NCBI GenBank assembly: GCA_964035545.1
Contig: OZ037771.1
Coordinates: 2,305,628 to 2,369,627 of the forward strand
Origin: Bugula neritina
Lineage: Eukaryota; Animalia; Bryozoa
Length of the DNA stretch: 64,000 nt
Direction: 5' to 3'
Part shown: positions 1 to 23,400 of the stretch, piece after piece
How positions within the stretch are numbered: the stretch's first letter is position 1
Layout of the letters: the number at the start of each line of letters is the position of its first letter
Position numbers and translations under genes: made by a program
Notes under the pieces: model-generated
What the model saw: only the letters and a program-made list of their open reading frames with translations
The model's database searches: none
Told to the model about the DNA's origin: nothing

Positions 1-266
1 TATTCAAGTAATTTATTTGATATGGCTGCTTAGTGTTCCCTTCGACAAGTTAATCTGAGAGTGAAACTGGTCACCACTCATGATAAAATCTCTGAAGGTT
101 TGAAGGATTTTTCTGGCACAGGTTTTTATCCAATTTTAGCAATTTCAATTATTATTACACAGTATATAACAAAAGTCTTTTGAGCGTTTGAGCCTTTTGG
201 TAGAAAAATAAAACAAAAAATGGGAAAATTTTAACGGGTAAACGTGACAGGAATTCAATTTCCTAC

Positions 267-3200
267 CTTTTTGACCAGGGTATCCTAAGCCAGCATATCC
301 TGGAAGGCCAGGTAAACCACCAATTCCTTTGTCACCCTTCATTCCTTCAAAACCAGGTGAGCCATCTCTTCCATTTCTACCAGGATAACCCATTGCACCT
401 TTGAGTCCAATGGTCAAATCACCCGGTTCTCCTTTATCGCCATTCAACCCAGATCTCCCTAACAGTTATGGATATTCATTGAAACATTCCCAGTGTTCAT
501 AAATATATTATGTTTTATATCTATCATAGAACAAGCATTATACTTGGTAGAATCAAATGAAACTTTACCTTTGTTGCCATCTTTTCCAGGCTCTCCTGGA
601 GACCCCTTCAAACCAGGAGGACCTCTTTCCCCTTTTGGTCCTGCTCCACCATCTGATCCGTCTTTGCCAGGATAACCTTTAGGTCCAGGAGCACCTGGCT
701 TTCCAGGAAGTCCACCAACGCCCTTATCTCCTACCAATCCGTATAAACCTGCAAAACCAAAAACAAACATTAGAAGAATTTTGTTCAGAACTACAAATGT
801 CCGACAGTAGTTTAGTTTAAATTCTGCATTTGGAACATTTACAGCATTCCTAAAGTCAGAACACAATAGTATGTAGAGTCTTGAATGACTATTTACAAAT
901 ACAAGTTCAAAATATTTTATTTTACTGATTTTATTTGAAATAACAAAATCACAATCGGAAATAGTACATAAAAATATTTTAAATCTGAAATAAAGCAAAG
1001 CATGAGGTTGATTGTCATATCTGGAGCCAGGAGCTGGATGCTGCCCTACAACAGAGAGAGAAAGAGCATGTCAAACAAATGACAGTGAGTGAGAGTACCA
1101 GACTGTGAGACCACAGCAAGTGAGCCAGGCCAGCCATGAGAGAGATCAGTCAAATACAGTTTGGAAAGGTTGACAGGCTGAAGCCCAGCTCACTGGCCCG
1201 TGGGCCCAGTGGCCCACTAGCCTACTGGCGTATTCACTCAGTGTTGTTTGTCAGACATGATTTCTCTCCCTGACTGGCCCAACCGACATGCCATTAAACT
1301 TTATTATCTATTGCCTATTTAATTATTATTTCTTGTTTATTTATTACTTATTGTTTATTTATTACTTATTGTTTATTTAGTATTTATCCATTACTTATTA
1401 TAATTATTATTTATTTATCATTATGATTTGTTTACACTAAACTTTTGCTACTCAAGTTAAATACAATACAAATAATTTCTAAACCAAAGCAAAGCTTAAC
1501 TTTTAAATAAGTTTTATTATTTATTCTTCTATTATAGCATAAAATTATAGATTGTGCATTTTTTCCAAAAAAATTAAAATATAATAATGCTGGCATTGCA
1601 TTGTATTAGTATGATTTCTAAGAAAAGTAACTAAAAACACACAAAATGAATATCTGTAAGATTCCACTTACCTGCCCCTTTGATTGCAGAACCAAGTCTG
1701 ATAATCCACCACACCGTCTACTGATAAGTTTATTACACAAACTCCACGTATGAATGGCAGTCAGAAATTTATAAAACTCTTAAAGATATTTCAGTTCTGC
1801 AGAGTTATTTTATCATCTTTGCATTTTACTAAATACCTATTTGCTGCGAATGAATGGAGGCATTGAACACAGTTTGAGAAAACTCGTGTTTCACTAAGCA
1901 TCATTAAATTGCTTTTATATTTTAATTCTTTTTATAAACATGATACATTTCAAACATATAATTGCTATTGAACAAAGAACTGCTATTAAATATAGCAAAG
2001 TTATACTGGTGAGTACATGCTAGAGTTACTTTGAACAAATAGTCAATACAAATCTAACAAGTGCATCTACTCACCGGGTAAAAAATTCCTGGGATGTTTA
2101 TGTAAAGGAGTCACCATCAAGGAATTAAATATCTTCATTTAATTTAATGAAACTTCATCAAAATATTAACTGGCGTTAAAAAATACAACTGATACTTGTT
2201 TGAGTTTGGATCTAGAGGGTCAGCTGTTTAACAACTCTGAATACCATATCATAAAAGATTGTCTGTCATGTGATCAGACTATGCAAAAATCCGAGTCGAC
2301 TTATAAAACAACACAGTCGGCTATCGGTAATGTACAACCCAAGTACTTACTACTTTGAGTTGTATAACGACTTTCTTTTCAAAAGTTGTAATTTTCATGC
2401 ATAAATTGAAAATAAATGCAACATAAAGAACAGTAAAATATATTAAATTAAACGTAATGTAAGTGCAATAAAATAGTCACAATGTTATACATGATTGTTT
2501 GAAATGTGGTATGCTATTACTTTAATAGGTGATAGTTGCACCTTGTTGAAAAGTAACGAAAATGAAACCAAATCTTAGCTCAGCTCACAGTAAAACTCAA
2601 AGGAGAATCATTGTAATATTGCTATGACATAACTTTAATTTATTCAAGTAGTTGCTAAGCAAATCATACCAAAAAGACCAGACTCCTACGGAGCTCTAGC
2701 AATACCCAACAGGATCAACAGTGTACAATCTCACATTTAAACAAGTTACTCTTTCAACACAACGACATGAACTTATATTAGTTTGACTGTGATAAAGACC
2801 AACCTGGAAAACCTCTGTCACCCTTGGGTCCGGGAAATCCTCGATCTCCTTTTTCACCATCTGGTCCAGGAAACCCACGTGGACCCTCCAGACCTGCATG
2901 ACAAAGCATTGTGTTAGAAAAGGTGGTTCTGAGAAATGTATTCTGTCTTAAACAGGTAAGCAACACTTTAGAGTAGAAACTGTTGCATTCTATTCTAAAC
3001 TTAATTACCAGGAATTCCTTTCTCCCCTGGCAACCCTGAAGGCCCATCGTCACCATTTCTTCCAGGAAAACCTGGAGCGCCAGGTTCTCCTTTGTCACCA
3101 GATACTCCCGGCAAACCATCGCTTCCTGGAAAGCCGCGTGGCCCAGTATTTCCTTTAGGACCCTAAAAGTTTTGGATAAACAAGTAACTTAGCTGCCGCC

Positions 3201-6200
3201 CATTCGAATGTTAAAACATAGTTGGTTCAAAAGTAATATCATCAAGTCAATTTTAAATTGCTAGCAGTTGAAAACCATAGACAGAGATGCACTAGGTACA
3301 TAACTGTGATAAACTACTGTAGTCAGAATATACACTCACTGGATCTCCGGTCAACCCAGCAGGACCAGGAAGTCCATTTACACCTGGCTCTCCCTTCACA
3401 CCGAGTTGGCCTGGTATACCACCTGGTCCGGGTTCTCCCTTCACACCAGGAGTTCCCTCTCTGCCGTAGCCAGGAGGCCCCACGTCTCCTTTTACACCTC
3501 GAGGTCCTACATATACCAAAATGACAAGTATGATATGCAATCTAGAGTGGCAGAACTTTTTTAACCTTTTAAAGATCAAGAAAACGGTATTGACATCTGT
3601 GAAGGCCTACCTGGAAGTCCAGGAAGACCATCTAATCCCTTAGCACCATCTATTCCTTTATCACCGGGAAGTCCTCGATCACCTTTGCTTCCTGGTAAAC
3701 CACGCTCTCCGAATGCACCAGGTAAGCCATCAATACCAGGCATACCCATCATACCTAAGTTATACAAACATGTTAAAATATAGAATTACACTATTATAGT
3801 GTATTACTAGAAATAAATCGCTAAATATAAATACTACATCAGCAACTAGTGACATAGAGTGTATAGGTTAAATTAGAAGATATACTGGTAATAATTTCAT
3901 ATGCAACTAAAATTATTTTACCTTTATCTCCATCTCTTCCGGGTCTACCTGGTGAACCATCTAAACCGCGATTTCCTTTACTTCCGGGGAAGCCATCAAC
4001 ACCCTGCAAACCTTTATCACCTGGTGGCCCCTCAGGACCCTCAAATCCTGGTTCACCTTTCTCACCTGAAAGAAATAAATATCTCATAAATACTCCACCA
4101 GCAAGCTTTTAGAACTATTTTACAATTACATTGTGATCATACCAGAGACATTTAGGAGAAGTAGGGGAGAAATTGAGATAGCCTAAGTTCTTTAATTTTA
4201 TTGTTAAATTTCAGTTTGGGGCAGGGGTTGAATTTCTCGCAAGAACATAACTTCTTATACTACCATTCTAATCTAGAAGACAGCCTTTTCTCAATTTCTC
4301 TATCACTGCACTTACCTCAGTAGAATTGTATAGCATAACCTGCTCATTAAATGCTGTTTGATAATTATGATATAATATTTGTATCGTCAATTCTACACAG
4401 AGGAAGAATAACACTATCTAATTAAACAATTGTGTGTAACATATCCAAATAAATGTATTAAACATCTTACCAGTGACGCCTGGAAGACCATCTAGTCCTC
4501 TCGGTCCAGGTAAACCAGGCTGTCCTTGATTACCAGGTGCTCCAGGAGAACCGTGTTCACCCTTATCACCACGTGGACCAGTAAGACCTGGAGTACCATT
4601 AATTCCGTCAAATCCTCTGTCTCCTTTATCACCTGACAAACCGACATCACCAGGAAAACCTAAAAAAGAATGGTTAAATCATCATATTTTTGTTCCATAA
4701 GTTTGTAGATAGTTGTACTATATTAGCTAACAGTAACAGTCCTTACTTTTCACCATTAGCAATTGCTACTAGCAATATTTACCAAATATAAGCTCTACAA
4801 CTATCCTTAATTACCAGCAATAGTTCCAGTTACTCGGTAGTTGCTGTCATGTGCTATAGGTACTAGGTACTAGCTAGAGTTGTATATTTGGAGCCCAGTT
4901 CTTACATTTTCATTAAAGCTACATCATTGAATAATAAGTTTATGTTTTCATTAACAAAACCGTTACCTCGTTCTCCCTTGTCACCGCTTGGACCTACACT
5001 GCCTGGAAATCCATCTCGTCCTTTATCTCCTATCATTCCCTTAGCACCATCTAAACCTGGTCGGCCAGTTTTTCCATCCAATCCTCTCAATCCCTTTTCA
5101 CCCCTATCACCTGTTTAACACAATTTTTATCCTGTGTGTAGGTGCCAAATACAAATAGAAAAGCCTAAAAACATTCTACAGTTTTAAATCCAATCTGAAG
5201 TTGGCAGCACAAACATGGTATAGGATTTTACAGTTTTAATCATCAAATAATATTTAACGAAAATCTACACCACAATTAAAGACAAGACATATATTAGCAA
5301 AATAATTACTTTTTAAAGCATAATGCAACTGCTTTTGATCATTTCAAAAACAATTTTAAACATATAAAAATGGGCAAAGATAAAGAATAGAAAATTATTA
5401 AAATATATATTATTTTATATAAAATGTAGCACAACTTTTTTGGTATAAATTTGAGCTTCAACCAACAGAATAAGTGTTTACAATGTTTGAATGTCTAGAC
5501 AAAACAACAGCACAAACCTTTATCACCACGATATCCTGGTAAACCGTCTAAACCTTTTATGCCAGGTTCTCCTTTAGCACCCGCAGCTCCTTGATTACCA
5601 GCTGCATCTTTTCCCTGTAATTGAAGACAATCACACTTGATTTCTTTAACAAGCAAACTGCACCACATCATGAAACAGAAAACTAGTCTTATCAAAGTTT
5701 ATATGCAAATTGAAATTAATTAATGCAATTATTGATTTATTGAGATAAAAAGTGAGCTAGAAACGTTATGTTGGTATTAAAAACTTTATGGTCAAACTAA
5801 TGGAACATGTCCAACAGATAAAATTGTTTAAAATTTTGGTCATTATAAACTTTTTCCTATCCTGATTTATTTTACAGAATACAATTTTAATCTAACTAAA
5901 AATATTTATCAAAAATGTTGAGAATAAGATATAATACCGGCAATCCTCGTGAACCAGGATCTCCAGTTAATCCACGATCTCCTTTAGGGCCCAACAAGCC
6001 AGGCAAACCCTTGTCACCTCTGGCTCCCGGAAGACCATCTAGTCCAGGATCACCAGGTAGTCCATCTAATCCGGGCTTGCCTGACACACCAGGTACTCCT
6101 TGGAATCCCTTATCTCCTCGTGGGCCATCTCTGCCCATTTCACCTGCAGCAACATCATCAGAAGAAACACTCAGTACTTGTTTTCTTTGCAACCACTGAA

Positions 6201-9200
6201 CGTAAGAATAAAAACTAAATTTTATTTTAAATAGTTGAAATATAAAGACGTACCTTTAGCTCCTTTATCACCATTCAAACCGTCTACTCCATCTAAACCA
6301 TCAAGTCCAGGTAAACCAGGCACACCCTTAGCCCCCTTTATAGCCTGTAACATTTCCACAGTCAAATGCATAAGATGCTTCTAGTTAAGAATACCAAAAC
6401 ACAACTCATTACAAATACATATTCGACCTTTAAAAGTACACAAATAATCGTACACTGTGGAAGTTAGTAATATTAAACCTGTAGGAAATACCAACAGTTT
6501 ATACCCAGGTGCGAGGGGAAAACTCCTAAAGCATATGAATATGTGACAAAGTATCGGAGTTACACTTTATGCTAGGATTGACATGTGTCTAGAAACTTAC
6601 AGTGGACTGGCCCGGCTCTCCTTTTTGACCCGGAGTTCCGCGTGGCCCGGTTAAGCCTTCAAAACCGTCTAAACCTTTGTCACCTTTAGGTCCCTGGAGA
6701 CCGACCCCTGGTAGTCCTTCAATACCTGGCTTACCATCTGCACCGGGAGCACCTGGTGTACCCTCTCTTCCAGGTATACCATTGAGGCCCTAATTTAATA
6801 GCCACAGGTAAACATAAAAGCAAAATAACATTAGTGTAAGCTTGGGAAATACTTCATAAAGGTATATATACAATTATACTATAATATTATATATTACAAT
6901 ATGATATATTGCAATATTATTACATGAAATAGATTAGTTGCTCATCAACAGACGAGTAACCATGGTTACGCTTACCGGCTCGCCCTTAGAACCGGGATTT
7001 CCTGGCATACCACTGGGACCTTGTGGCCCTTGAATGCCCTTAGCACCTGGTTCTCCAAAATCTCCCGGTACTCCCCTGGGACCTGGAGCTCCTTTTATGG
7101 GCAGCGGTGGTTGGCATTCAGTCTTCTCTCCTTTCATTCCTTTCTCTCCATCTCTGCCATCTTTACCTGGGAGACCCTAAACAGAAGACATAATCATAAA
7201 ATACAAAACGGAAAGAAATAAAATTACAGTTGAACTTTTACTGATCACTGCCTAATTGACCAATGAAATGAAAATAAATCAAATGAATTATAGAAACTTT
7301 CAATTTAATCAATAGACTAGTAGAAGTAAATCATTGGCAAAACTGTTCTTTTCCTAACTACTTCAACAAAAACTTTGGCTTTGAAAAAAATAGTTTTGCT
7401 AAATTATTGCATGCAGATCTGTAAAGTGTTTGCTCAATGAGCGTAGTTAAAAATAATGGCGAGTTGTGTTCAAATATAAAACAGATATTATTAATTGCAG
7501 TGAAATTATGCAAATAAAATATATAATTTTGTTTCTGTCTACCAACAGCTTGAAAATCATTTTTCTAAAACAGTGTAAATGACTATTGAAACAAACCGAT
7601 ACTCCTTTTTCTCCTTGTATACCAGAAGGTCCATCATCTCCAGGCTCACCCCTGTCACCATCAACTCCTGGTACACCGCGTTCACCTTCCAATCCGCTGA
7701 GGCCATTGAAGCCGGGTTCACCCTTACCTCCGGGTGTACCAGGCAAGCACACTCTGCATTCTCCTCCTTTACTACCTGCAGGAAAAATTAGACTGAGTCT
7801 GCAAGCAAGTCATTACTGCTAGTACATGGCGCACACATAAAATGAGTAACATTTTCTGCATTTTATCTCAGGATTTCAGTTTCTTTACCAGGAACATGAG
7901 ATTGGTCAACATATGCAAGAACAAGCCGACATTGATTTTAGTGCAATTTGAGTATGACTATGACTGCTACATAAAAGTGCATTTTATGGATACTACATGT
8001 ATGTAGTGCTGTGTTACAGCCAATACACATAAACTTTAATAATTATGACAAAAATGCTGCAAGACATAATCCAAGAAGTTAGAATTAATAGAGCTTAGCT
8101 ATCAGGACTTTGAAGTTTGGAAACACAAGAAAACACAAGTTTAGAGCTTTGGTTTATCAAAAGTGTTACATCTTGTATGTAATAGTTCAATATTACATGG
8201 TTTATGCTATGTAGTATGTAATAGCACGATATTACATGGTTTATGCTATCTCATGGAGAATAAACAATGAAAAAGAGATGTTGATCTCCGCCCAGGAGCT
8301 TCATTTTAATTACAGTTTCCTTATTACTTTGGAATTTTTATTTTTTCTTAAAAAGTAATGTTATTATATTTCACCTTTTGGACCAATACCTCCTTGGTCA
8401 CCCGGAATTCCTGGATATCCACGTGGACCGATGTCTCCCTTGGGACCAGGTGGGCCTCTGGGTGGTAGACCACCTGGCTCTCCTGGTGCACCAGGTAATC
8501 CAGTATTTCCCTAGAATAATTATGTGTTTGTATAATTATGTTTAATCAAGTCTATTCATATTACATTTTCTTGTTATTTTAGGCAATAGAAATTCCAAAA
8601 ATTTAGCAACCTGCTAGTATTTAATTATAATTTAGACTGTATATATTCTATATAATATGCATTTTATAGTACATGTATTATATACCCATATTCTATATTG
8701 TATAATATATTCTATACTATATGTATTTTATTACATTCTATAGAAAACTGTGATATAAAATCTAAATAAAATAACGACAATAACCTTGTCTCCAGGTTGT
8801 CCAGGAAAGCCCATATCTCCATCATTACCATCTCGTCCAGGTATAGATAAGCCAGGCAACCCTTTAAGACCTTCATTACCTTTCTCACCTTTCAGACCAT
8901 CTCTACCAGTTCTTCCATCTTCTCCAGGAATTCCTAATAACATACAACACCACTATACCATGTTTCTATATTACCACTATACCGTGGTTCTACATACTTT
9001 TAGAACCATTACAGCAATTGACAAAAAATGAAATAAACATGTGTCTATTCTTATAAGGAGTTCAAAATTGCATGATTACATAAATAAACAGGTATTTAGT
9101 GTTAATATTGAAGCTTCTTGACCTTATTTTCTAGATGACCTTCTCACAGCTTTCAAAATTATTACCAGTTTTTAACTTCAATCATTGCATAGAGATAGCT

Positions 9201-12200
9201 TTTCAATTGACATAACTTTGACAAACAACTTGATAATAGAAAATACATGTTCCAGGCTTAACGGCATGTGTGGAGGATGTTGTTTCTTTAATAACGGCAG
9301 TAAAATAACTTAAACCACCTGCATGCTGTTTTACCTGGGTATCCAGCTTCTCCTTTATCTCCCTTGGGACCAACTGGGCTAGGGGAGCAAGGTCGGCCAT
9401 TAAGGCCAGGAATTCCGGAATCTCCCTTAGGTCCGTCTTGTCCTGGAAAACCTGGGAATCCTGGTTCTCCAATGGGTCCCACACGGCCCTCGTTTCCCTT
9501 AGGTCCGGGAGCACCAGGTATTCCTCCATCTCCCTTACCCTATTCAATATGCAAACTAAATTATTTCATAAATAAAAGTAAATAATGAATACTTCATAAT
9601 ATTATTATTTAAATTTTCAGCAACCTATAATGTAATGCTTTTTATACCAGTTGAGTCACAGCATAATTTAAGAAGAAAGAGCAACAGAAAATGTTAAAGT
9701 TGATTTAACTGTCACTGTAAAGTAGACACAACAAAGCAATCAGTGATCTGCCAACGAAGTGTACTTACACCTGGGTTTCCTGGTGGTCCTGGTAATCCAG
9801 GTCTACCAATTTCACCAGTCCTTCCTTCCATTCCTTTAAGACCAGGATATCCATCTCTACCACGATCTCCCTTCTCACCTACATTTCCTTTCATACCATC
9901 TTGCCCAGGTGCACCTGGGAAACCTCTTGGACCCTGAAGTTAATAACAAACATGAAGGATAAGACCAATTAGCTAACAAAAATATTTCAGTTGGGATAAA
10001 TACACTTTTATGGTACACACCGGCGGGCCGGCTCCTCCACGAACACCCTTTTCTCCCTTCATCCCAGTTTGACCTGAGTAGCCTGGTGGTCCATCAACTC
10101 CATCATCACCAGACAATCCAAATTCTCCTTTGTCTCCCTGAAAAAGAAAAGAAATTATCACTGAATAAACAAATACATTTAAACACCAACTATGAAAAAA
10201 TGGGGAAACAACATTTCCACAAACTTATTACAACTCCTATAACTAGCTTTAAATTGGAAACATATTTAACTGTATTCAACAGGTGATGTTTACCTTTGCA
10301 CCTGGCTCGCCTCTTGGCCCAGGTCGTGCTATAACAGTAGTAGGGCCATCAACTCCAGGGGTTTGAGCGGGTGGTCCAGGGGGTCCCGGAATACCTTTAC
10401 CTCCTTTTGCACCCTTCTGACCACGTAATCCTATACCCCTCTCTCCTTTCATACCTTTAGCTCCAGGTAAACCAAGGTTTCCCTTGTCTCCAGTAGATCC
10501 TGTGAAGATCAGACATAGACTGGTGTATTATACAGGTAGGTGAGAAGAAAGTTCAGCCTCGTAGTCAAAAGACTGACCTGCATTTTTATATTGCTTCACA
10601 TTTGAAATATATTGATGAAAAAAGAAACTATTCAAAATGTGGTTAATCTAAAAATTATTCCTAACAGAGAAAGATGTGCTAATTTACCATCAATCACTCA
10701 GGGAAAATGATTTACATGTAACACCATAAAGTGTTAAGTTGGCAGAAAAGCTACAGCATTAAGCATCCTTTAAAATAAATAAATAAATAAATAGAGGAAT
10801 CAAAAACTTACCAACAAGCCCCTGCACTCCCCGATCTCCATCTCTACCTGGCACCCCATCTCTACCTGGAGGTCCATCTCTACCGATAGGGCCTGGTTCA
10901 CCTTTGGCACCTTTAAAGTTTGTTGCAGAATCTCCTTTAGGTCCGGGTGCTCCAGGTGCACCACGTCGCCCTTCTTCTCCGGTTGAACCAGGGAACCCTT
11001 GTGGACCTGCAAACAGACAGAAAAGTGTCTTAAGTGTTATTATTATTTGTCATATGGTGAACCTACATTGGGCCATACTGTTATAAGGCGTTGCATAAAT
11101 ATGTAAAATATAGAAATAGGGAAGAAAACATTTGCTACAAACCTGGCTCTCCATCAGTGCCGTTACACCCATCAATACCAGGTAATCCCCTTGGCCCTGC
11201 AGATCCTGGTAACCCAGGAATTCCATTCAATCCAGGAAATCCCGGCATACCGGATTTTCCCTAAAAAAGAAACTTACACTAATCAACATTTACCTAATTA
11301 GTGTAGTATTAGACAAAGCTAATAGTCATTATAAAGCATAAGTTATTTTCAAATATTTCATTATCGTCAAAACATTTGTGAGAGTTTTACTCTGTACTTA
11401 TGATCTGTCGATGCATTCTGGAACATTCATCAGTGCATATGTATGTTCTGTCTTCTCTTAATATTTGGTTTTGATTCAGCTACACAGCAGTCTGTTTTTA
11501 CAACATTAAATATCAGTAATATGCGAAATAATCACAAGAAGTGCAGACAACTTCTAATTGAAGGTGGCATACAGATTTATAAACGCACCAGATTGCCCTT
11601 AATACCGGGAGCTCCATCTCTACCAGGTTCTCCTTTCACACCTTTAGGTCCAGGTAATCCTTCCACTCCCCGTGGTCCTCGCAAACCCTTTAAACCCTGA
11701 GGTCCCAATGCTCCAGGATAACCCTTCAAGTTAAATGAAATACAAACATGTGTGTCTCTGTCAAATTTAAACCAATAAAGGTTAGTATGAATTTTTTTTA
11801 AATATTCAAATAAAATCTTATCTTTATGCAAAGTTTAAAATAATAAAGTATTTCATAAAACAAAATGACAACTGGTAGAGAAAACTGAAACTGTTTTCTA
11901 TTGTTTTATTATATTTATTAACTATCAGTGGGTGAAAATAAACAAAACAACTACTATTTAAAATACAAATGCAAATATTATAGCATTAAACAGTATACAG
12001 TACCCACCCTATCTCCTTTCTCAGCTATGCATTTACAAGTACCACCATTGCTACAGTCAGCCCCGACACAGGGCTCTTCGGGCTGCACCTACAAATATAT
12101 TATTCCATATTTCGTCATATAGAAAAGCCTTCTATAAGTGTATGCAGACAGTTGGAAAAAAAATACTAAAAAACCTATTCAAGCAGTTTGGCAAAATAAT

Positions 12201-15200
12201 GCATTTTAATCTTTAAAAATGTTGGAAAAGTTAGTAAAATAGTTCTGTAATATAATAAAATGTGTTTTAATTCAGTGCTGTAGTAATCAATAAATCAATT
12301 AATAAATCAATAAATCAATAAAATCGGTTTATACATCTAGCAACATATTAAATATTCTAGGAAAACTTAGCTAATGACGGCTACATAACATATTCCTAAC
12401 CCTTGCGGGTGCAGCCATGTATTTTCTCTGCTTTGCAATTGAAGCATATAATCACGTACTGATGTTATATAAATTAATACCTCATGATTTGACATTGTGT
12501 TGAACCACGTAACATAAAAACCTGAGCATTCAGTATACTTGCTTTGATAACTTGTGAATGATAAACTGTACTTTGATTAATAATTAATCGCAGCCATCTA
12601 ATAAATTATCTGCACATGTAAAACAACTTCCCTCTATAAATGACCCTCCATTGTAGTGGGATAAACACCCTGTCAAACAGCTATTCTTGGGACAGACATG
12701 ATAAATTAGTCTGCCTAATTATATTTGGGCAACAGAAGCCCCTTAAGATCCACGTTTGTATAGTGATAAAAACCTGCAAGGCCCTGCTAAGGCATTTTAT
12801 TTAGCCTTAGAATAAGATGATGAGTATTAGAGAAAGGGGGGGGGGTCTATTACAGTGAAAACTATTGCAGGTTTACAGGTTGGAATTGTAAAAGGTAAGC
12901 AATTAGCTAATACATCTGGATTTTCTAAAATTAATGTGATGGATATAATTATCATATTAGCTATAAGAGGTAAGTGCAAAGCAATTTTTACATAAACACC
13001 CTTGAGGTACCTCTTTTGGCAAAAAGGCCAAGTCACAGAACCGTTGGTTTGGTATTTGGTTTAGAGAGCAATATACCAAATTTTTGAAATGTATATATGC
13101 ACAATTCCAGTATATTATATCCACAATATTTGTAGGTAAATTGGTAAGTAGGAATTTAGGACTTGAAGCTTGTGGGATATATTGTATATAAATACTCAAC
13201 TCCATGCTAACATTGCTAATACCCATTGAAAAGATGTACTCAAATAAATAACAGCAATGCAACTTGCACTAATAGCTGCCACAGTGTGAAGAAGTCAACT
13301 AACTTTACAAAAAAAATTAATCTTTATGTAGTTTGAAAGGGGAATTTTTTTATACACTCCTAATGAATCAGAAGCCCGGATAGAAAATGCCAAAAATTTT
13401 AACACCTTAGTTCATAGCCTGTAAAAATGGCATTAAATGCTATAGCTTGAGGACCAGGAAATCTATCTCACCAGTGCGAACTCAGCTTTAAGTCGGCTGT
13501 TTTCGGCACGATTGCTTCGGGCTGCTGATTCATAGTCTGCATCTGATAGAAAGCCATTCTGCCATTGGTCCAATATTTCTCTGTACATCTTCTCATTCTC
13601 TTCAATTTGTAATCTCAGCTGGGTTGCCTAGCAACATAGTAACACAAACCAATAAGATTGTTCCTTCGCAACATAACAGAAATCAATAAGATTGTTCCTA
13701 AGCAAACTAAAAACAGTAATCAATAAGATTGTTGCTTTACTTAACACCTATGATTTCACTGATAGATAAAAGTACAATTTGACTGAAAAGATTTCTATAG
13801 TACTTTGAGCAGAAATTTTAATTATGCTAAATTTAGTTTGATTAAAATTGATTGGGATGTTATAACAGAAAAGTTGTGAGTGAAAAAAATAGCCCATGGG
13901 TAAATAACAGAAAGCATGCGCAGCATTAGGGGTTGTAATGTTATAAAACCATGAAGCAGTAAAACAATTGCAAAAAACTGAAATCTATTGAAATAAATCA
14001 CAATTACAGTTGAACAAATGCATCGAAAAAGTGTTACAGAGGTATCTTTTAAATTGTTTTGGCACTAAAACCTTTGACTTGTATGAATACCTACTCAATA
14101 TGCTTAACTAATTCATTATCTTCAGTGAGCGACTTTTGTTCAACAGATAAGTGTGATTTGATAAATTAAATTATTATTTTAAAGTGTTAGTCACCACTAT
14201 TAAAATTTTGGAACATCTAAAATAACTAAAAATATCTAATAGAAATGCTATACAGTTTGTTTATACACAGAATCCTGTTGAGGAGTAAATGTTCCTACAA
14301 TAGAAGATATTCACATATTAAAGTCATTCTGTGTCAAATTAATTCCACAAATTATAAACTGTAAATGTTTCAATGTGTGCAACATAATGCAAAACACAAC
14401 TAATAGTTGAGAACAAAATATTTTCAAAAGGTACTTTAGGAGTTATCTTCTTTTTTAATTTTTAACCTGCTGAAACTTTAGTTGAAAACTCAACTTTGAA
14501 TAAATTCAGGAAACACTAAAATTAAACTAAAACAAGTCAACTGCATGTGACTGAACTCTTTCACTGACCAACATAACTTTTTACTAGTAGGAATATTGAG
14601 TTGAGCGAGAGTATTAAGTTTGAGTACTGAGTGAGAGTATCAGTTTGAGTACAGAGTGGGAGTATCAGTTTGAGTACTGAGTGGGAGTATCAATTTGAGT
14701 ACTGAGTGAGAGTATCAGTTTGAGTACTGAGTGGGAGTATCAGTTTGAGTACTGAGTGGGAGTATCAATTTGAGTACTGAGTGAGAGTATCAAGTTTGAG
14801 TACTGAGTGGGAGTATCAATTTGAGTACTGAGTGAGAGTATCAAGTTTGAGTACTGAGTGGGAGTATCAATTTGAGTATTGAGTGAGAGTATCAAGTTTG
14901 AGTGCAGAGTAAGAGTATCAGTTTGAGTACTGAGTGAGAGTATCAATTTGAGTACTGAGTAAGAGTATCAATTTGAGTACTGAGTGAGAGTATCAGTTTG
15001 AGTACTGAGTGAGAGTATCAATTTGAGTACTGAGTAAGAGTATTAGTTTGAGTGCAGAGTGGGAGTATCAAGTTTGAGTACTGAGTGATTTTTACCTGTT
15101 ATTATAGAAGGTTTCAAGAATTAAAATTTAGTAAAACCTGCTAAAAAAACTGAAAATATTTTAGACCAATTGAAAATTGTTCCTGCAAATGATTTCATTG

Positions 15201-18200
15201 AAAACATGAGCAGAAACTGCCTGCTTTAGTCTGCTAAACTTTAGTAGCAAAACTTCCCTCACCTGTTGTAGCATATAAACTTAACAAGTTGGAACCTTTA
15301 CAAAAATACTCCTAACAATTTAGCTAACAGATCTGTTGGGAAAGATAACTCCACAGGTTCAATAGATAGACAGATCATGCAAACTGTACAAATAAAAACA
15401 AGCAGACGAACAGACATACAGACAACTAGACAGTCAGGTAGGTAGGTATACAGAGTGATAGAATAGATACAGAATGATAAAGTAATCAAGGATTTAACCA
15501 ATTTAAATAACATTCAGACAGATAGACAAGCAAATAGACAAACCTAAAGCTATGGAAAACTAAAGCAATGTATTCTTATTACATAGAATTAAACTATCGT
15601 AACTCATAAGCGCACAAGACTGGTGCAAAAACTAATCACAATGTAGCTTTACAAAAATGTAATTTAGAAGTTGTGTTCTTTTACCCGTTGCTGATTTGCA
15701 GTGGTTTGTATAGCATCAGATACTATTCCAGCTTGTGCAGTGGAAATCTACAATTGAGAGTTATATTATTATAGGTTTAAATTAGTCAAGAAAAACAGTG
15801 TAAGTTGGGGGAGGGTGTGGAGAGGACGGTGGCGTCATTAGAATAACTACATGTAGATAGATGAAGTTTACCAAAGCAGTAAAAATAGATAAAGTATATA
15901 AGACAAGGAGCCTGTATCTTGTAGTAAATTAGATGGTATAACATGACATTTTAAAAGCAGGTGAAGAATGCAATACCTCTGGTCGCGAAATAACTGCATG
16001 TAATGTCAGCAGCCCCATTTGAGTTAGCTATTTATATCATATTTCATTCTTGAGAATATCATGACAGTATAGATTTCAAGACTCAATGAAATTGACTATG
16101 AACTACTGGGGTATTTTGTAAAAAATGTGTATGAGCTGGAATTTACAACCCTTCTAATGTTTATGATACTAATTGGAACCAGGCTGTTAGGGCAAGCAAC
16201 AAACAGCAGCATTGTTTAATTCATTCATCCTGTGTAATTAGCTTTCAAGGGCTGCTCTGAAAGATTGAAAATCAAACAGGTTTCTATGCTTTTACAGCAA
16301 ACTCTAGCCGGCTACAACACAAGCTCGCATTACAAAAAATATGGTAGTTTTTATTAACATATGATAGAACGAACTAATGATTAGCCCTAAATCCTAACAG
16401 ACTAGAAACATAGTCTGCATTACTCTATAATGTACTGAAAGGCATAAGGGCCAAAGGCTTTCTGTATATACAAAAAGATTTCCGCACTCTGCAAAGAATT
16501 ATTTAGTAGTTATGCACGTTTAATGGGCAGTTACTAGCCAAGACGTAACAGTATGCCCTTTTTATAGCTTTCAGAAGAGATATTATGGAATATTCTAGTT
16601 CCTACTATAGCTGTGTATAGCAGAGTAGTCGTAAGGAGTAGAGTGTATATTCATACAGTTAGTCTGACTAAGTGTTTATAGAGAAACTTGCAGTGTTGTT
16701 AACCTAAACAGAGAACAAGGTCTAAGAAAACATAGCTTGTGCTACTAGGCTTTGCTGGTAAATGTTGGCAAACCTGTCTACTATCATATATATAAAAAAG
16801 CTATGAAACTGCACACTCCACAGCAGTTCACACCACACAGGCTAAGTAAAGCATGGACCTACTATCACATAAAGTTCAATTAAGCTAATCTCAAATATTT
16901 TTGCAGGTAAAGGACATCTCAAACTAAGTTAGAATTTATTTCATAATATAACACTTTCTAATGGCTACTGTTGCTCCTCAAAGTTTTAGTTTAAAAACTA
17001 GCAAATTTCTCAAACAGTATAATACTTATAGTAGCTAGAAATTTATTTAGAACTAAAGTACAACAAATGTTTGATTTACCAGTGTAATTCGGGCTTCATA
17101 CAGAGCCGTCTTCACTGCATCCTCCCATGATAACCCATAATTTTTAGCAGTTTGCTGCAGGAAGATGACATCATTGTTGCTATAGTAACCACTAGCAGAA
17201 GCTAGAGGGAGCCGATAGCCAGGGGGCAGTTTCTGCAAGGAGGTCTGGTAACCGATGGAGGAGTTCCTATACTCTCTTCTCCATTCATCTAGCAGATAGT
17301 TTACATCAGCAGCTGTCGCTATTCTCTAAGAAGAATATACAATTTATTATCTAGAATACTGGCACTGAGGCTTATAATACTGGCACTGAGGCTTATAATA
17401 CTGGCACTGAGGCTATTCTTCATTCTATGACTTTATGGTTTCACTCAAAATGTTTGATTGGCAGCTGGTTAGTTGTCAGTTTAAACTTTAGGCAAGCAGA
17501 AAAAGCAGTCTGGGTTTTTATCAAAATAAAATAGCTCTAAAAATCATAAATTAATTGAGAATACCAGCAGAAGCGTACCATAGGTTAGCAAGATTACACA
17601 AGAAAAGGAGAGACCAGACAACAGTAACAATATTATATAACCAATTGAAGGGTGAGAATTGGATTATTAGAATCTAAAGTAGTTTATCACAAACCTGCAT
17701 GAGGTGATTATCAAGCTTAGCAATGGCTTCCTGCTGAGCCGCAATCTTACTGCGCAGGTCCTGGCTGTTAGTACTAGGGTCCTCCAAATTAGTGTAGGCA
17801 GAGATAAGATTTCCATCATGGATTATGTACCGTGCCTGCAGATCCTTGATGTACGCCGATACCACAACAGCTGGTGCATCGGCCATGTACAGGACTGTAG
17901 AAGTTGTCTTCTCAGTAGTGTTGGTAGTGTTAGATATAGTTGTTAGTTTAGTGGGGTGGTACTTATCTAAACCCTCATGCTTGTCGGTGGGTAATGTAGA
18001 AGGTAGGTCTAGAAAATTCTGACTTTTAGCCTGTAAGAGGCCAATGCATTATGAGAAACAAACTAGAATAATGCTATGAGATAATAGAATACTGGATGAT
18101 AAACCAGCATTAGCAAACCCAGTTAGGCAATGCCAACATGCAAACCCCAAGCCCAAAGCAGAAAAAAAATCGATTAGTAACAAATTGAAACCTTAACAAG

Positions 18201-19588
18201 TGGACAGAACTTTCACCAAAAGCAAAAAATATTGTAATTCTTATTTATGAGTTTACTATGTAAAATGTTTTTTCTTAGCTATAAAATATTTATATCGAAC
18301 TGAAATCTAAAAGCAGGTGTAAATAAAAGAAAATAAAATGTCAATTGTTTTCATGGAGTAAATAATAAAGAACTTTTATTTTAGTTGCAATGATTTGTAA
18401 AATGAGAATTGCTAGAATCCTAATTATTTTATTTACATGAAATATTTGGGCAAAACATTAATGGTATTAACAGAACTAGTTCAATAACAGTAAAAGGTAG
18501 CAATTCATTACTGCCATCAACTTTATATCAAATAGAATTATAAATTTCTCATTTTAATTACTAAAATTAATGTCATGTTAATGTTAATCAATTTCTTTAT
18601 ACCCTGCATTATTTCTTTGGAATATAATAATAAGGATAAAAATTGGGCTGTTGGATTAAAATATTGCAACACCTGCTCTAGAATGTAATAAAACACAATT
18701 AGCAGGAAACTGCAGTTCAACAAAGAGTCATGAGACTGACAAGAAGCCTGTCTCACTACATCAGACTCAACATGTGATATTTCACTCTCTACAATAGGCT
18801 GTTATGTCTGTTGAAGCTAAGGATCATGCATAAAATTCAGAAAGGGGCCCTTCAAGGTGCTGATTTAGCTAGTTGAATTGTTACCTCACTGAGTTGAGCA
18901 TAGGCACAATCCAAGACCGCTATTGAGATGATAACACCAACAGAAAATCTAAAATATAAACAACAGACTAATTAGTAAGAAACTTATGCCAATGAAAAGG
19001 GTAATTGGATAAATATTATTGTAATTTATATTATAAAAATATGCATTATATTTTGAATTGAAATAAGGCAATAAATGCAATAACTAAACAGAAAATTTAC
19101 AATAATAGGATAATTTGGGTACACTTATTTTCAGAAATAAATAAATGTTTGCATTATTTTTTTTAAAGTCAAAAAATGGTGATAATAAATTATAGAAAAA
19201 TATGATATAAAATATTATTTTATTTTCATATTTAGTTAGAGGCAATGGTATCAAACACAATTTACTGTGATTCAGCTTACAAAACTAAAGCAAAACAAAA
19301 TGAAAATTGAATACTGGCTTAAAGAAAAAAATATACTAGCTAGCATATCTATGTATAACTTTAAGTATGTGTATAAAATTTAAAAATGGCATTACTAGCA
19401 CTATCTGACTTATAATTCCATGCAGTTATAAATTGAGAAATAAAAAAAATCGAAATTAGATTATTAAAAGACCAGCAAAAATTGACACTATCAGTCAATT
19501 ATACCACAAACTGTTTTGAAAATCAACAATAGTTATAAATTTTTTATTTAATTTTTGAGACTTAGAATCACCTGAGAATGGACTTCAT
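267..19588 (-). CDS. COL4A2: Type IV collagen alpha2-like chain (5' part; 3' end and NC1 lie beyond the window start), multi-exon
   Basis: Phase-consistent GT-AG exons: 19588-19572, 18948-18885, [18030-17695, 17325-17080, 15747-15685, 13627-13472], 12088-12008, 11723-11589, 11260-11143, 11006-10812, 10499-10294, 10137-10021, 9933-9769, 9539-9335, 8933-8785, 8510-8375, 7775-7597, 7176-6976, 6789-6601, 6344-6254, 6143-5938, 5614-5518, 5110-4967, 4659-4471, 4065-3922, 3754-3611, 3506-3340, 3162-3009, 2893-2804, 748-569, 458-267. Interrupted Gly-X-Y. 7S start [24 protein letters not shown] resembles the alpha2-type PCGGRDCSGGCQCYPEKG. 7S motif GIDGCNGT. Interruption GECRVCLPG. Head-to-head with an alpha1-like gene. 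Confidence 0.9.
13472..13627 (-). CDS. Phase 0-0 coding exon (52 aa) immediately upstream of the 7S exon
   Basis: gttgctag|GCA ACC CAG ... GCA CTG|gtgaga. [52 protein letters not shown], no stop. The next clear acceptor on - is the collagen 7S exon at 12088 (phase 0). Confidence 0.75.
14607..15087. repeat. Minisatellite, 25-26 bp unit
   Basis: Tandem variants of TTTGAGTACTGAGTGAGAGTATCA(A/G). Confidence 0.9.
15685..15747 (-). CDS. Candidate phase 0-0 exon (21 aa, [21 protein letters not shown])
   Basis: caattgtag|ATT ... CGG|gtaaaa; open and in phase with neighbouring exons. Confidence 0.55.
17080..17325 (-). CDS. Phase 0-0 coding exon (82 aa) of the same N-terminal domain
   Basis: ttcttag|AGA ATA GCG ... 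ACA CTG|gtaaat. [40 protein letters not shown]...[15 protein letters not shown]. Read-through of the donor would stop at 17053. Confidence 0.78.
17355..17414. repeat. 21-bp tandem repeat, about 3 copies
   Basis: AATACTGGCACTGAGGCTTAT. Confidence 0.85.
17695..18030 (-). CDS. Phase 0-0 coding exon (112 aa) of an unrecognised non-collagenous N-terminal domain
   Basis: cttacag|GCT ... ATG CAG|gtttgt. Open frame [20 protein letters not shown]...[17 protein letters not shown]...[24 protein letters not shown]. Contains ORF-track 17674..17886. Confidence 0.8.
18885..19588 (-). CDS. Signal-peptide exons 1-2 of the alpha2(IV)-like gene ([27 protein letters not shown])
   Basis: ccaccATG Kozak context at 19588. 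A 17-nt exon (AG|gtgatt) and a 64-nt exon (ttttag| ... GAG|gtaaca) give 27 codons: basic N-terminus, hydrophobic core, AYA-Q cleavage-like site. Confidence 0.85.
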
Positions 19589-20478
19589 GGTGGAAACACC
19601 AATCACCTAGTCCTGTTCCCCGGAGTGAGTGAGAGTAATCCTTCAGATAACCAGCTTTTTCAGTGCAAATCTTAGCTTTACAGAATTCTCCACTAATTTA
19701 TAAGCCATACATCTGTTCTTGCCTGATGCTTGGCTGGTTATTTAGAGAACTGACTACAAAAAATTGAAATGTGCATTTGCAAAGGCGTGATTAACCTGAC
19801 AACCCTAAGATTTTTAAAACAAACCAATCAGTTGGGCATGAATGAAAATCTCTCACTTCCCATTGGTTATTAAATTAAAATTCAGTCGCTCACGTGTTAT
19901 CCACGTGAATTTGCAGAATAAACCTACGCGAAGACAAATAACGTTATATTTTGCATAAAATATAAAGAAAAATATAGTATTTAAAACATTTTTTAATTTT
20001 ATTTTGTTATATTACATAAATAAATAACTTTTGTGTACTTTTTCAATTTTTTTAAAACTTGATACAACTGGAATCATAATTAAATGTACTGAAGTGTGTG
20101 AGGTGTGATTCGGCGACCAACCACCAAAACTTTGTAATGTGGACTCCATAGATTAGTAGCTCCGACCAGCTGCTGACTGACACTGAACCGGTAGTATGGC
20201 TATACTTGGTGATTGAATATTCTACTCAAATTAAGCATTTCAATTTGTTTTATAGAAAATATTACGCAATAATATAGATTACTTGATATCAAACCTCTCT
20301 GGGCTTTGCGAGGTGTTGGTGGTGGCTGCAATTGTCAGTGTGATTGTCAGCATCGAATACTAGCATTGAGTTGAGATTCGACTCAAGCATTGCTAGTTAC
20401 AACTGACTGCAACTTCTGGTCAGTTATACGAGTTAACCATTCGGTTACTGCCAGAATCACATTCTCATTCTGGACAAC
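19589..20478. promoter_or_regulatory. Bidirectional promoter and 5'UTR region between the divergent collagen IV genes
   Basis: 890 bp between divergent ATGs. CCAAT at 19824-19828, ATTGG at 19862-19866, two CACGTG E-boxes at 19891-19896 and 19902-19907. Head-to-head COL4 pairs with shared promoters are established. Confidence 0.65.
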
Positions 20479-23400
20479 ATGTCTACTGGATTAGGACATG
20501 CAAAACCAAAATGTTGGAGCTGGCTCTTGATCACTACAGTTCTACTAATGTTTCTCTTTGCTACGACAGAGTCGGTGAGTTAAAGTTTTCATTTGATGAT
20601 TTTACTGATTTTGTTCTCATTTGATAACCTAATGGTTAATTGTTGATAATCACAATACTATGTTTTGTAAAACATGGGTGAATAACAAGACTTATACATA
20701 AAGTGACAATTTCTAAAATGTTCTCTGGGTTAATAGGCATACATAGTTTTCAAACGTAGTGTGTCGATACATCCTAACCAGATATTTACTTCGGATTGAA
20801 GTTCTAAAACACCATGAAACAGATGAAGTTTTATTTATTCAATATAGTGCAGTAGTCACAGTACAGTACAGTCATTGCCCATGTCTATACTTGATAGCTT
20901 ATCAAGGAAATAGCAGTACATTTTATGAAATTGCAAAAATTCTTTTTATTTTGTATAGCTGAGTTTATGTTTAATGCAAAGCTACTTGAGCTTGATGGTT
21001 GTTTGTAGTATTGCACTGGCAGTTATATTACACACTATTGCTAAGAAAATCGTACACATAATTCTCTGTGAATGGTTTAGTTGGTCAGCTAGCACACTGT
21101 CTTTGAAAATAATTTTTAAAATACTTTCTATTTATGATTGCTGGGAGCTTATATTTATTTTAAAATGTTTGTCTACATACTTAGATGTAAAAATTATTTG
21201 AAACTTTTTTCAGAAAAATTGCTGTGACGTTCTAAGATATTTAAGCGGATTCCTACAACATGTTCCATTATAATATGTACTGAGTAGATCCTAGTGCACC
21301 TCAAAAGGCCTCATTAATTAGGTTAACAGCACCTGTATCTCGTATGGACATGATAGACATTTGTACTTGGCAGGTCTAAAGGGTGCATCATTCATAACCC
21401 CTGTGATCGCTTACATCTTTTCCGAAGATTTAGAAATATGCCCTTATTCTTTTACACTGACTGTTGAAAAATACTGCCTTCTCGCCCAACTGCCCACCAC
21501 TTATGGCAAACTTTCCAATTTTCAATATTTTCACCTATTTATGTTGATTAATAACTTCATTGTTGTTCTTCAGAAATGTGGAAGCAGAAGTTGTGATGAA
21601 CCATGTGAATTGTGTAAAGGAATAAAAGGAGAAAAGGTGAGATATAATAGTGTTTCCTGTTGGTGTATCCAGCAGGGAAGTAGCCATATTGTTGGCTTCT
21701 CAGGTATAAATATTTTCGCTTATTACCTCATATTGCTCTTGTGTCTGTAGGGAAGCATAGGATTACCCGGCCTTGCGGGTTTATCTGGTATGCCTGGAGA
21801 TTTAGGACTAATAGGATTTTCCGGTCCAATCGGCATACCTGGAGAGCCGGGTGATGATGGGGCACTCGGACCCAAAGGAGAAAGGGTATGTGACTTCACC
21901 TACCATAGAAATTAGTGTTGTACTGTGTGGTGTAACTTACATAGCAACAGCAGCAACAGCAGCAGCAGCCCCTTTACTTGCAGCTACTATAACCACGTGA
22001 TCACATCTCAGATTTTATAACTAAAATTTTTGGCCTACTGTATGTATAAAGTAGAGCAGCAATAAAATAATTTAGAGCCCCTAACTGCAGAATAGGGCTG
22101 CCTGTGCATGTGTACATGATAATGAGTACAGAACCTGCAATTGTGGTCTCTACTGCCTGTAGTCACAACAAATGATCATAAAAATTATAAATATTTAGTG
22201 TGTTTAATTAATTGCTGCCTGTTAATTACTCCAGTGCAAGCATAGGTATGCAGAGAGGCAGCAGCTGGTGCAGAATGATGCCCACTGGTAGTAGACTTAG
22301 TAGTTGTGTGCTAAAAATACAAATTCCAGATATCTTCCAGCATTTCTCTGTTCTTCAGAACAAATGAACAGACATTTAAATCATGATATTATATAGAGTT
22401 GTGTCTATGCCAAAATTCTATCACTTGTTTCCATTACTTCTCGTTATTATGGGAATAAATTTTCTTACCTATGAACTTATCGTTGTGCTTTCATTCCATG
22501 CAACTCTTTCCAAACACTGGATGAAAAATCCAATCGCATAATTCTCGAAGCTAGCTTGGAGACACAGTGTATATGTTCTTTAGGCATTTTCTTTAAGCAA
22601 TTAAGTACATGACAGATTTGTGTGTCTGGGATTTGGTATACCTTCACTAAATACCATGCTGACTCTTTTTCAGGGTTCAGTGGGCAGAAGAGGAGGTATC
22701 GGCATAATGGGTCTCAATGTGAGTAGACATCATTGTTTATAAAGTATGTGACTCCACCTTGTCAAGTTCATATTGTGTGTTTCTCTAATATAATTTATAT
22801 TTTTATAAATTTTTTCATGGAGACTGCAGGTGAAGAAAAAGCGTATAATATTATCTTGTTTATCATATAGATATCATATTCAAACTTATGGAAATATAAT
22901 TTCTTTAAATATGCTGCACTTTACAGAATTGGCATCTGATTTCATAGTTTGCTGCCAGCATGTCTTGTGCCTTTGTGTAAACAAATATTAGCTTTCAATT
23001 CCTTCACCATCAGTCATATTTCTTTACATTTTCTACAAGATTGTCATGTTGGTGATTTGGTAGAGAATCTATTTTAAATAGAAGAAATTTTAAATAAAAA
23101 TGTAGCCAATTGGAGTTATGAGAAGTTTTTAAAGATTGCCAGGATAAATAAATAGATTTGTGATGCACGAATGCCAGTGTATGCTATAATGTTACATGAT
23201 ATGGCAAGTTATGCTGCCAAAACTAACTTCAAATGCTGAGTGTGTCATCCAGATACTATATGAATCTCACCATGTATCCAGTTATCTCTGTATTTATACA
23301 ATGGATACATTTGGGAGTCACAAAATTTTAATAGGAAATTCCTCCCATATCCACAGAAACTAATATTTTGATGTTTGCTCATTCAGTTATCTATTGGCAA

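Follow-up and report, generated by a model that had tools for sequence, protein, structure and literature searches.

Four conserved exons between the signal peptide and the 7S domain of an alpha2-like collagen IV gene in Bugula neritina: a probable N-terminal module

A stretch of 64,000 nucleotides (nt) from the bryozoan Bugula neritina (NCBI GenBank assembly GCA_964035545.1, contig OZ037771.1, positions 2,305,628 to 2,369,627 of the forward strand), called the window below, contains a collagen IV gene of the alpha2-like type on the minus strand, paired head-to-head with a plus-strand gene of the alpha1-like type. Four additional exons, designated here as A to D, lie after the signal-peptide exons of the alpha2-like gene and before its first 7S exon; together they encode about 267 non-collagenous residues (the module). 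Sequence comparison indicates that these four exons are real, conserved, and lineage-restricted coding sequence. It is rather probable, with some room left for doubt, that they are genuine coding exons of the alpha2-like gene, spliced in frame between the signal peptide and 7S. The gene product would then probably be a new N-terminal variant of collagen IV. Positions are given in window coordinates unless a contig is named.

Structure of the Four Exons

In the direction of transcription, exon A occupies positions 18030-17695 of the minus strand (336 nt, 112 amino acids (aa)), with the acceptor ctcttacag and the donor CAG|gtttgt. On the same strand, exon B (17325-17080; 246 nt, 82 aa) is flanked by cttcttag and CTG|gtaaat, exon C (15747-15685; 63 nt, 21 aa) by ttgtag and CGG|gtaaaa, and exon D (13627-13472; 156 nt, 52 aa) by gttgctag and CTG|gtgaga. 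All four exons are open, flanked by GT-AG, multiples of 3 nt in length, and in phase 0 at either end. They have a GC content of 0.43-0.47, versus about 0.33 in the surrounding introns. An initial annotation, made from the letters of the window alone, had proposed four phase-0 exons of these lengths at this place, and all of its coordinates hold. The features it quoted from the translation (SNTTNTT, NSS, the helices, LLDEW/ILDQW, REYR, and RSNR) are all present.

The module occurs once in the 216-Mb genome. It is located only between the signal-peptide exon and 7S of the alpha2-like gene, and was not found at the other collagen IV locus of this genome. In the alpha1-like partner gene, the signal-peptide exon (20479-20574, plus strand) leads directly to the Cys-rich 7S exon (21574-21636, plus strand) with nothing between these exons 1 and 2, just as the initial annotation had described. 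Its proposal of a lineage-specific module on one chain agrees with the distribution of the module, which is conserved, lineage-restricted, and encoded by the alpha2-like gene only.

Exon A opens right at its acceptor and has no usable upstream ATG. For this reason, and because its first 31 residues are identical in a sibling contig, it needs the signal-peptide exons. The first of these, sp1 (19588-19572, minus strand), was read directly as ATG AAG TCC ATT CTC AG; it consists of ATG and 14 further nt (17 nt in total) and ends in a split codon. It is identical at 17/17 positions in the sibling contig L004, where its two flanks are identical at 48/50 and 47/50 positions. The second, sp2 (18948-18885, minus strand; 64 nt), ends in phase 0 at the donor ...QLSE|gtaaca, and is kept in L004/L005. 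The first 7S exon (12088-12008, minus strand) is in phase 0 at both ends and encodes 4 Cys residues. Skipping of exons A to D is also in frame, and yields the canonical chain AYA|QLSE-VQPEEPC.

The introns of the module contain several tandem repeats. An array of about 19 copies of a 25-nt unit (88% matches) lies in the intron between exons C and D at 14602-15088; in the sibling contig, this array is far shorter or missing. A 34-nt unit is repeated 2.8 times at 13640-13737, directly before the acceptor of exon D, and repeats an acceptor-like motif. A perfect 21-nt repeat (2.9 copies) is found at 17355-17414, directly before the acceptor of exon B. The latter two repeats correspond to large gaps in the comparison with the sibling contig.

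Conservation in Deeply Diverged Lineages

The same gene order was found in three deeply diverged lineages: the window with its sibling contig, L008 (equivalent to L009, L024, and L025), and L022 (a lineage also including L006, L012, and L013). In each of them, the alpha1 gene on the opposite strand is followed by a signal-peptide or signal-peptide-like exon, exons A, B, C, and D, the 7S exon, and Gly-X-Y exons. In L008, alpha1 exon 2 lies at 426-364 on the opposite strand, the signal-peptide-like exon at 2685-2757, exon A at 3576-3875 (300 nt), exon B at 4453-4698 (246 nt), exon C at 4929-4991 (63 nt), exon D at 5297-5452 (156 nt), and the 7S exon at 5978-6064, with Gly-X-Y exons behind it. 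The corresponding positions in L022 are 4893-4834 on the opposite strand for alpha1 exon 2, 7349-7424 for the signal-peptide-like exon, 8085-8411 (327 nt), 8973-9215 (243 nt), 11161-11223 (63 nt), and 13440-13595 (156 nt) for exons A to D, and 14328-14411 for the 7S exon, again succeeded by Gly-X-Y exons. The signal-peptide-like exons of both lineages have the same split-codon phase as in the window.

Across the three lineages, the module exons all have lengths divisible by 3, are in phase 0, and are flanked by GT-AG; exon C is always 63 nt and exon D always 156 nt. The aa identity to the window is about 22-30% overall for exon A, which contains a conserved core, 38-48% for exon B, and 52-63% for exon D. 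The 7S exon shows 71-78% aa identity to the window over the aligned part (L008/L009 and L022). DNA alignments to the distant lineages are possible for exons B and D only. Exon C was assigned in L008 and L022 by position, length, and phase. Exon C of L008 and that of L022 align with a BLOSUM score of 42, versus -7 for the next candidate, and their similarity to exon C of the window is weak (20-27% aa).

An exhaustive HMMER search with exon B against a library of 1.84 billion proteins revealed 7 true homologues, all of which are exon-sized open reading frames (ORFs) from metagenome or Logan assemblies of environmental or host-associated origin. All contain the motif GYYSNxDVIxLQQxAxxYGLxWExAVK, and without exception their homology stops at a phase-0 GTN codon. 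One of them, P0004, includes an exon A-like part and an exon B-like part in one ORF, connected through a short open intron. Four other matches were discarded: P0002 and P0011 are repeat proteins, and P0009 and P0010 are likewise, judged by their scattered short matches. Word-indexed protein searches gave no match for exon A or for the alignment of exon D, and the profile of exon B retrieved no further members. A scan of JGI data with alignment A3 detected two short contigs only, both of the L022 lineage.

Comparison with the Sibling Contig

The sibling contig L004/L005 shows about 90% ungapped nucleotide identity to the window, and all exons and all splice sites are present in it. The introns have an ungapped identity of 0.905 with 47 indel events in about 5.1 kb, versus 2 indels in the 801 nt of the module exons; the intron rate would predict about 7 there. 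Both exonic indels are in frame, and no stop codon is introduced. The identity is 0.905 for exon A (342 nt in L004), 0.870 for exon B, 0.937 for exon C, which is 90% identical in L004, and 0.981 for exon D. The ratios of nonsynonymous to synonymous substitution rates (dN/dS) against L004 are 0.88, 0.54, 0.33, and 0 for exons A to D, respectively, with dN = 0 for exon D. The 50-nt flanks of exon D are identical to those of L004 at 49/50 and 48/49 positions, compared with the intron baseline of 0.905. Exons A and B are fast-evolving by these figures, and exon D appears strongly constrained, its intronic flanks included. The check suggested by the initial annotation, a comparison with relatives upstream of col4a2 including dN/dS, came out in favor of conserved ORFs: they are kept in L004, L008, and L022, with dN/dS of 0-0.88 against L004.

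These data bear on the possibility that exons A to D are chance open frames or decaying pseudo-exons without any product. The intron-like divergence of exons A and B (dN/dS of 0.88 and 0.54) would fit this explanation, as would a 16-nt tandem duplication ATATTGGACCAATGGC that shifts the frame of exon D in L005 (L005:13418-13654). Exon D is intact in L004, and the duplication in L005 may have arisen during assembly or represent a genuine null allele. Decaying sequences would not be expected to have homologues at 38-66% aa identity with identical exon boundaries in several lineages in which the introns are unalignable, nor to tolerate only in-frame indels and no stops. The confident predicted fold of exon B (described below) and the dN of 0 in exon D point in the same direction. 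This explanation is already contradicted by the comparative data, and we consider it extremely improbable.

The divergence is unevenly distributed within the module. The helical half of exon A is 0.81-0.89 identical and exon B 0.87 identical to the sibling contig (intron 0.905), with the disordered first 31 residues of exon A being identical. The fast divergence of the helical part of exon A and of exon B may reflect relaxed or diversifying selection on the domain surface.

In the intron between exons B and C, two blocks at 16100-16350 and 16600-16800 are 95-99% identical to the sibling contig, versus the 90.5% baseline. They contain no open frame, have no Rfam match, and are unalignable in the distant lineages. 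These blocks may represent an intronic enhancer of the collagen gene pair. A search of positions 12000-20500 against Rfam gave no match.

Connection between Exon D and the 7S Exon

The donors of exon D are situated at the end of the homology in all three lineages, as CTG|gtgaga in the window and as CAG|gtaggc and AAC|gtgagt in the other two. If the frame is read through the donor, unrelated tails of 2, 5, and 49 residues follow in the three lineages, and exon D therefore does not encode a conserved C-terminus. Early stops are found beyond the donors of exons A, B, and C, too. The next acceptor with coding conservation after exon D is that of the phase-0 7S exon, at a distance of 1383 nt in the window, 525 nt in L008, and 732 nt in L022, and the 7S exon opens with (V/A)QPEEPC in every lineage. 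The initial annotation had taken exon D for an internal exon that ends at a donor and not at a stop, and the conservation of the phase-0 donor in three lineages speaks for this. We infer that exon D is spliced to the 7S exon.

Several observations weigh against the incorporation of the module into the collagen chain. Between the sibling species, the divergence of exons A and B is close to that of the introns, and exon D is frameshifted in L005. The skipping of the cassette yields a perfectly canonical chain. An AATAAA signal is located about 75 nt past exon D in L008. No spliced transcript-derived ORF with the module was obtained in any of the protein searches. A weak hint that inclusion is not both abundant and constitutive comes from one search of sequencing runs with a 7.6-kb query: an RNA run with most of the module exons should hold about 10% of the query words, and hence should be listed, and none was. 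The missing RNA run would also be explained by strain divergence or unserved runs. The only run retrieved in this search was a DNA run, X1, whose contigs are contiguous over 12000-14590 without joints; since it is a DNA run, this contiguity says nothing on splicing.

The inclusion of the module may itself be optional. Strongly conserved intron flanks are typical of regulated exons. From the in-frame skipping and the conserved flanks of exon D, an alternative cassette of the alpha2-like gene is therefore a live possibility as a form of the preferred reading, and it agrees with the data equally well.

Some of the same observations would be accounted for by a short secreted product of about 295 residues. 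In this scenario, the promoter and the signal peptide are shared, the transcript ends past exon D by intronic polyadenylation or in an unseen terminal exon, and the collagen mRNA always skips the cassette. The canonical N-terminus generated by skipping, the stop codon 2 codons past the exon D donor in the window, the AATAAA in L008, and the lack of an RNA run holding the module exons among the runs listed are all in line with it. On the other hand, the read-through tails are mutually unrelated, early stops are equally present past exons A, B, and C, and a consensus-like donor is placed exactly at the end of the homology in three lineages. In the window, no AATAAA is found closer than about 600 nt to exon D. 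The alignment of the window with L004 contains no second conserved block in the first ~300 nt past exon D (to ~13171), where the identity is 0.69-0.86. A product with a terminal exon would also not require phase 0-0 in all four exons. We regard the short secreted product as unlikely, but as the alternative that deserves serious attention.

Another explanation assumes an independent gene, consisting of the signal-peptide exons and exons A to D, inserted between the two collagen genes; the collagen gene would have its own unrecognised first exon just upstream of 7S. Nothing specific favors this explanation, apart from the link between exon D and 7S being drawn without RNA. Among the listed ORFs inspected for the window (1383 nt) and L008 (525 nt), no ATG-started signal-peptide-like exon was seen in the interval from exon D to 7S. 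The 7S exon begins at a phase-0 acceptor in all three lineages, and the tight linkage and co-orientation of these exons across a deep divergence also speak against an independent gene. It is very improbable in our judgment, and in-frame splicing of exons A to D between the signal peptide and 7S stays the preferred reading.

Sequence and Predicted Fold of the Module

Searches and structure predictions were run exon by exon. No Cys is encoded by the module in any lineage; the initial annotation had reported its lack in the window, and this holds for all four exons. Exon A encodes a Thr/Ser/Asn-rich linker, and an N-x-S/T sequon is present there in all lineages (NTT, NSS, and NAT), so that the Thr-rich patch with sequons recognised earlier in the window is a general feature of the module. 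Such a segment is consistent with a secreted, glycosylated stretch.

In the AlphaFold2 (AF2) model of exon A, residues 1-53 are of low confidence, and helices are predicted at 54-82 and 89-111. Exon B is predicted to form three helices with a mean confidence score (pLDDT) of 93.4. Exon D appears by eye to encode two amphipathic helices. Helices, as the initial annotation had proposed, are thus predicted in exons A and B. A complex prediction in which the exon A helices, exon B, and exon D were entered as individual chains scored 0.00, which has no bearing either way.

Searches against Pfam with every module exon gave nothing below E = 0.009 and nothing near the cut-off. For exon B, a PDB profile search returned 0 matches, and the best E-value of Foldseek on PDB was 2. 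The best Z of VIA-align for exon B was 5.7, obtained with generic helices, and ESM Atlas returned generic helical rows only. The module, searched by exon, matches no described family in Pfam or PDB.

A furin-cleaved propeptide was considered and set aside as unsupported. The initial annotation had noted the RxxR sites REYR and RSNR and had named a propeptide as one reading of the module; these positions are not RxxR in the other lineages. An R-x-(K/R)-R furin site is not conserved either; the only instance is RLRR in L022, close to the end of exon D. Since the RxxR sites are not conserved across lineages, removal by furin is not indicated.

Comparison with Known Collagens and Possible Function

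To our knowledge, 7S comes directly after the signal peptide in canonical alpha(IV) chains, and an N-terminal globular domain is lacking. The alpha2-like Bugula gene resembles canonical COL4A2 (viking/let-2 type), the head-to-head partner of COL4A1, in its head-to-head arrangement with a short shared promoter region, the Cys-rich 7S, the long interrupted Gly-X-Y region, and the NC1 domain with two C4 repeats. It differs in the four conserved extra exons, which encode the ~267 non-collagenous residues before 7S.

A survey of COL4 noted extra domains only in ctenophores and the filasterean Ministeria, and bryozoans are unmentioned there (bioRxiv 10.1101/2023.10.18.563013). These proteins are a precedent for a collagen IV scaffold gaining lineage-specific non-collagenous domains. 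They differ in belonging to non-bilaterian or unicellular lineages, and their relation to alpha1/alpha2 is unsettled.

The N-propeptides of fibrillar procollagens are highly diverse (PMC7619536). Like these and the N-terminal variants of collagen XVIII, the module is a non-collagenous N-terminal part before the helix that varies by lineage or isoform; this is a likeness of working, not of family. Unlike them, the module contains no TSPN, VWC, or Frizzled domain (the Pfam searches were empty), no Cys, and no conserved furin-type site, and it has no relation to them in sequence or fold. A limited literature search found no paper that describes a domain of this kind for the collagen IV of a bilaterian.

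If the module is part of the chain, the signal peptide would be followed by about 50 residues of a Thr/Ser/Asn-rich linker, disordered and probably glycosylated, and then by a Cys-free, all-helical region of about 215 residues belonging to an undescribed family, before the Cys-rich 7S, Gly-X-Y, and NC1 parts. An alpha1-alpha1-alpha2 protomer would have one capped chain, with a ~30-kDa helical, glycosylated domain at its extreme N-terminus, and four such caps would meet at the overlapping 7S segments. The most economical function would be a steric or kinetic control of 7S assembly, through modulation or delay, or the provision of a docking surface; we suggest this with low confidence, on the model of the variable N-terminal domains in other collagens.

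Collagen IV is among the most conserved animal matrix proteins, and its N-terminal 7S is the site at which four protomers are cross-linked. A conserved domain of this size before 7S on one chain would alter the packing of this hub, and could give a handle on a poorly understood assembly step. It is tentatively proposed, with somewhat less than even confidence, that in bryozoan-type animals an undescribed extracellular, all-helical, Cys-free domain family is fixed N-terminal to 7S on one chain of the main collagen IV protomer. If this is true, the protomers of their basement-membrane network would each have a glycosylated globular cap at the end where tetramerisation takes place. This would have no precedent known to us in a bilaterian collagen IV, and would serve as a natural experiment on the control of 7S assembly. 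The module would define a new domain family without known relatives, and the rule that the signal peptide is followed by 7S may not be universal among bilaterians. If the exons are an alternative cassette, they would act as a switch between capped and canonical protomers.

Collagen IV Genes at the Locus

The minus-strand gene qualifies as collagen IV by the defining features tested: an NC1 domain, 7S with Gly-X-Y, and head-to-head pairing. Its 7S region starts with the pattern C-x3-C...C-x-C...EKGDR. The Gly-X-Y exons (145-11831, minus strand) comprise many short ORFs that run toward the start of the window. The NC1 exons are located outside the window, 1.8-3.6 kb past its start, at G000:C7:2302048-2303848 on the minus strand; downstream of the Gly-X-Y exons on the same strand, they encode two C4 repeats (PF01413) with matches above the cut-off. 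Matches to collagen IV NC1 structures in PDB reach E-values down to 1e-120. The head-to-head pairing of collagen IV genes is also kept in L004, L008, and L022.

One NC1 piece of the minus-strand gene scores 122.9 bits with alpha2, 120.7 with alpha5, and 114.6 with alpha1, has the alpha2-like length, and aligns to alpha2/alpha4 without a 2-residue difference, and a second piece favors neither chain type. By its NC1, the minus-strand gene is thus only slightly of the alpha2 type. The partner gene is clearly alpha1-like in sequence; its NC1 piece at 52695-52889 (plus-strand gene) has its best scores with alpha1/alpha5/alpha3 chains.

A second set of C4/NC1 matches is present at G000:C7:2297398-2298982 (minus strand), about 3 kb past the NC1 of the alpha2-like gene and on the same strand; two of these matches contain stop codons. 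Another collagen IV NC1 locus is found at C2:16095457-16096856. The former may be an extra NC1 copy or a pseudogene, and the latter may belong to a third collagen IV gene.

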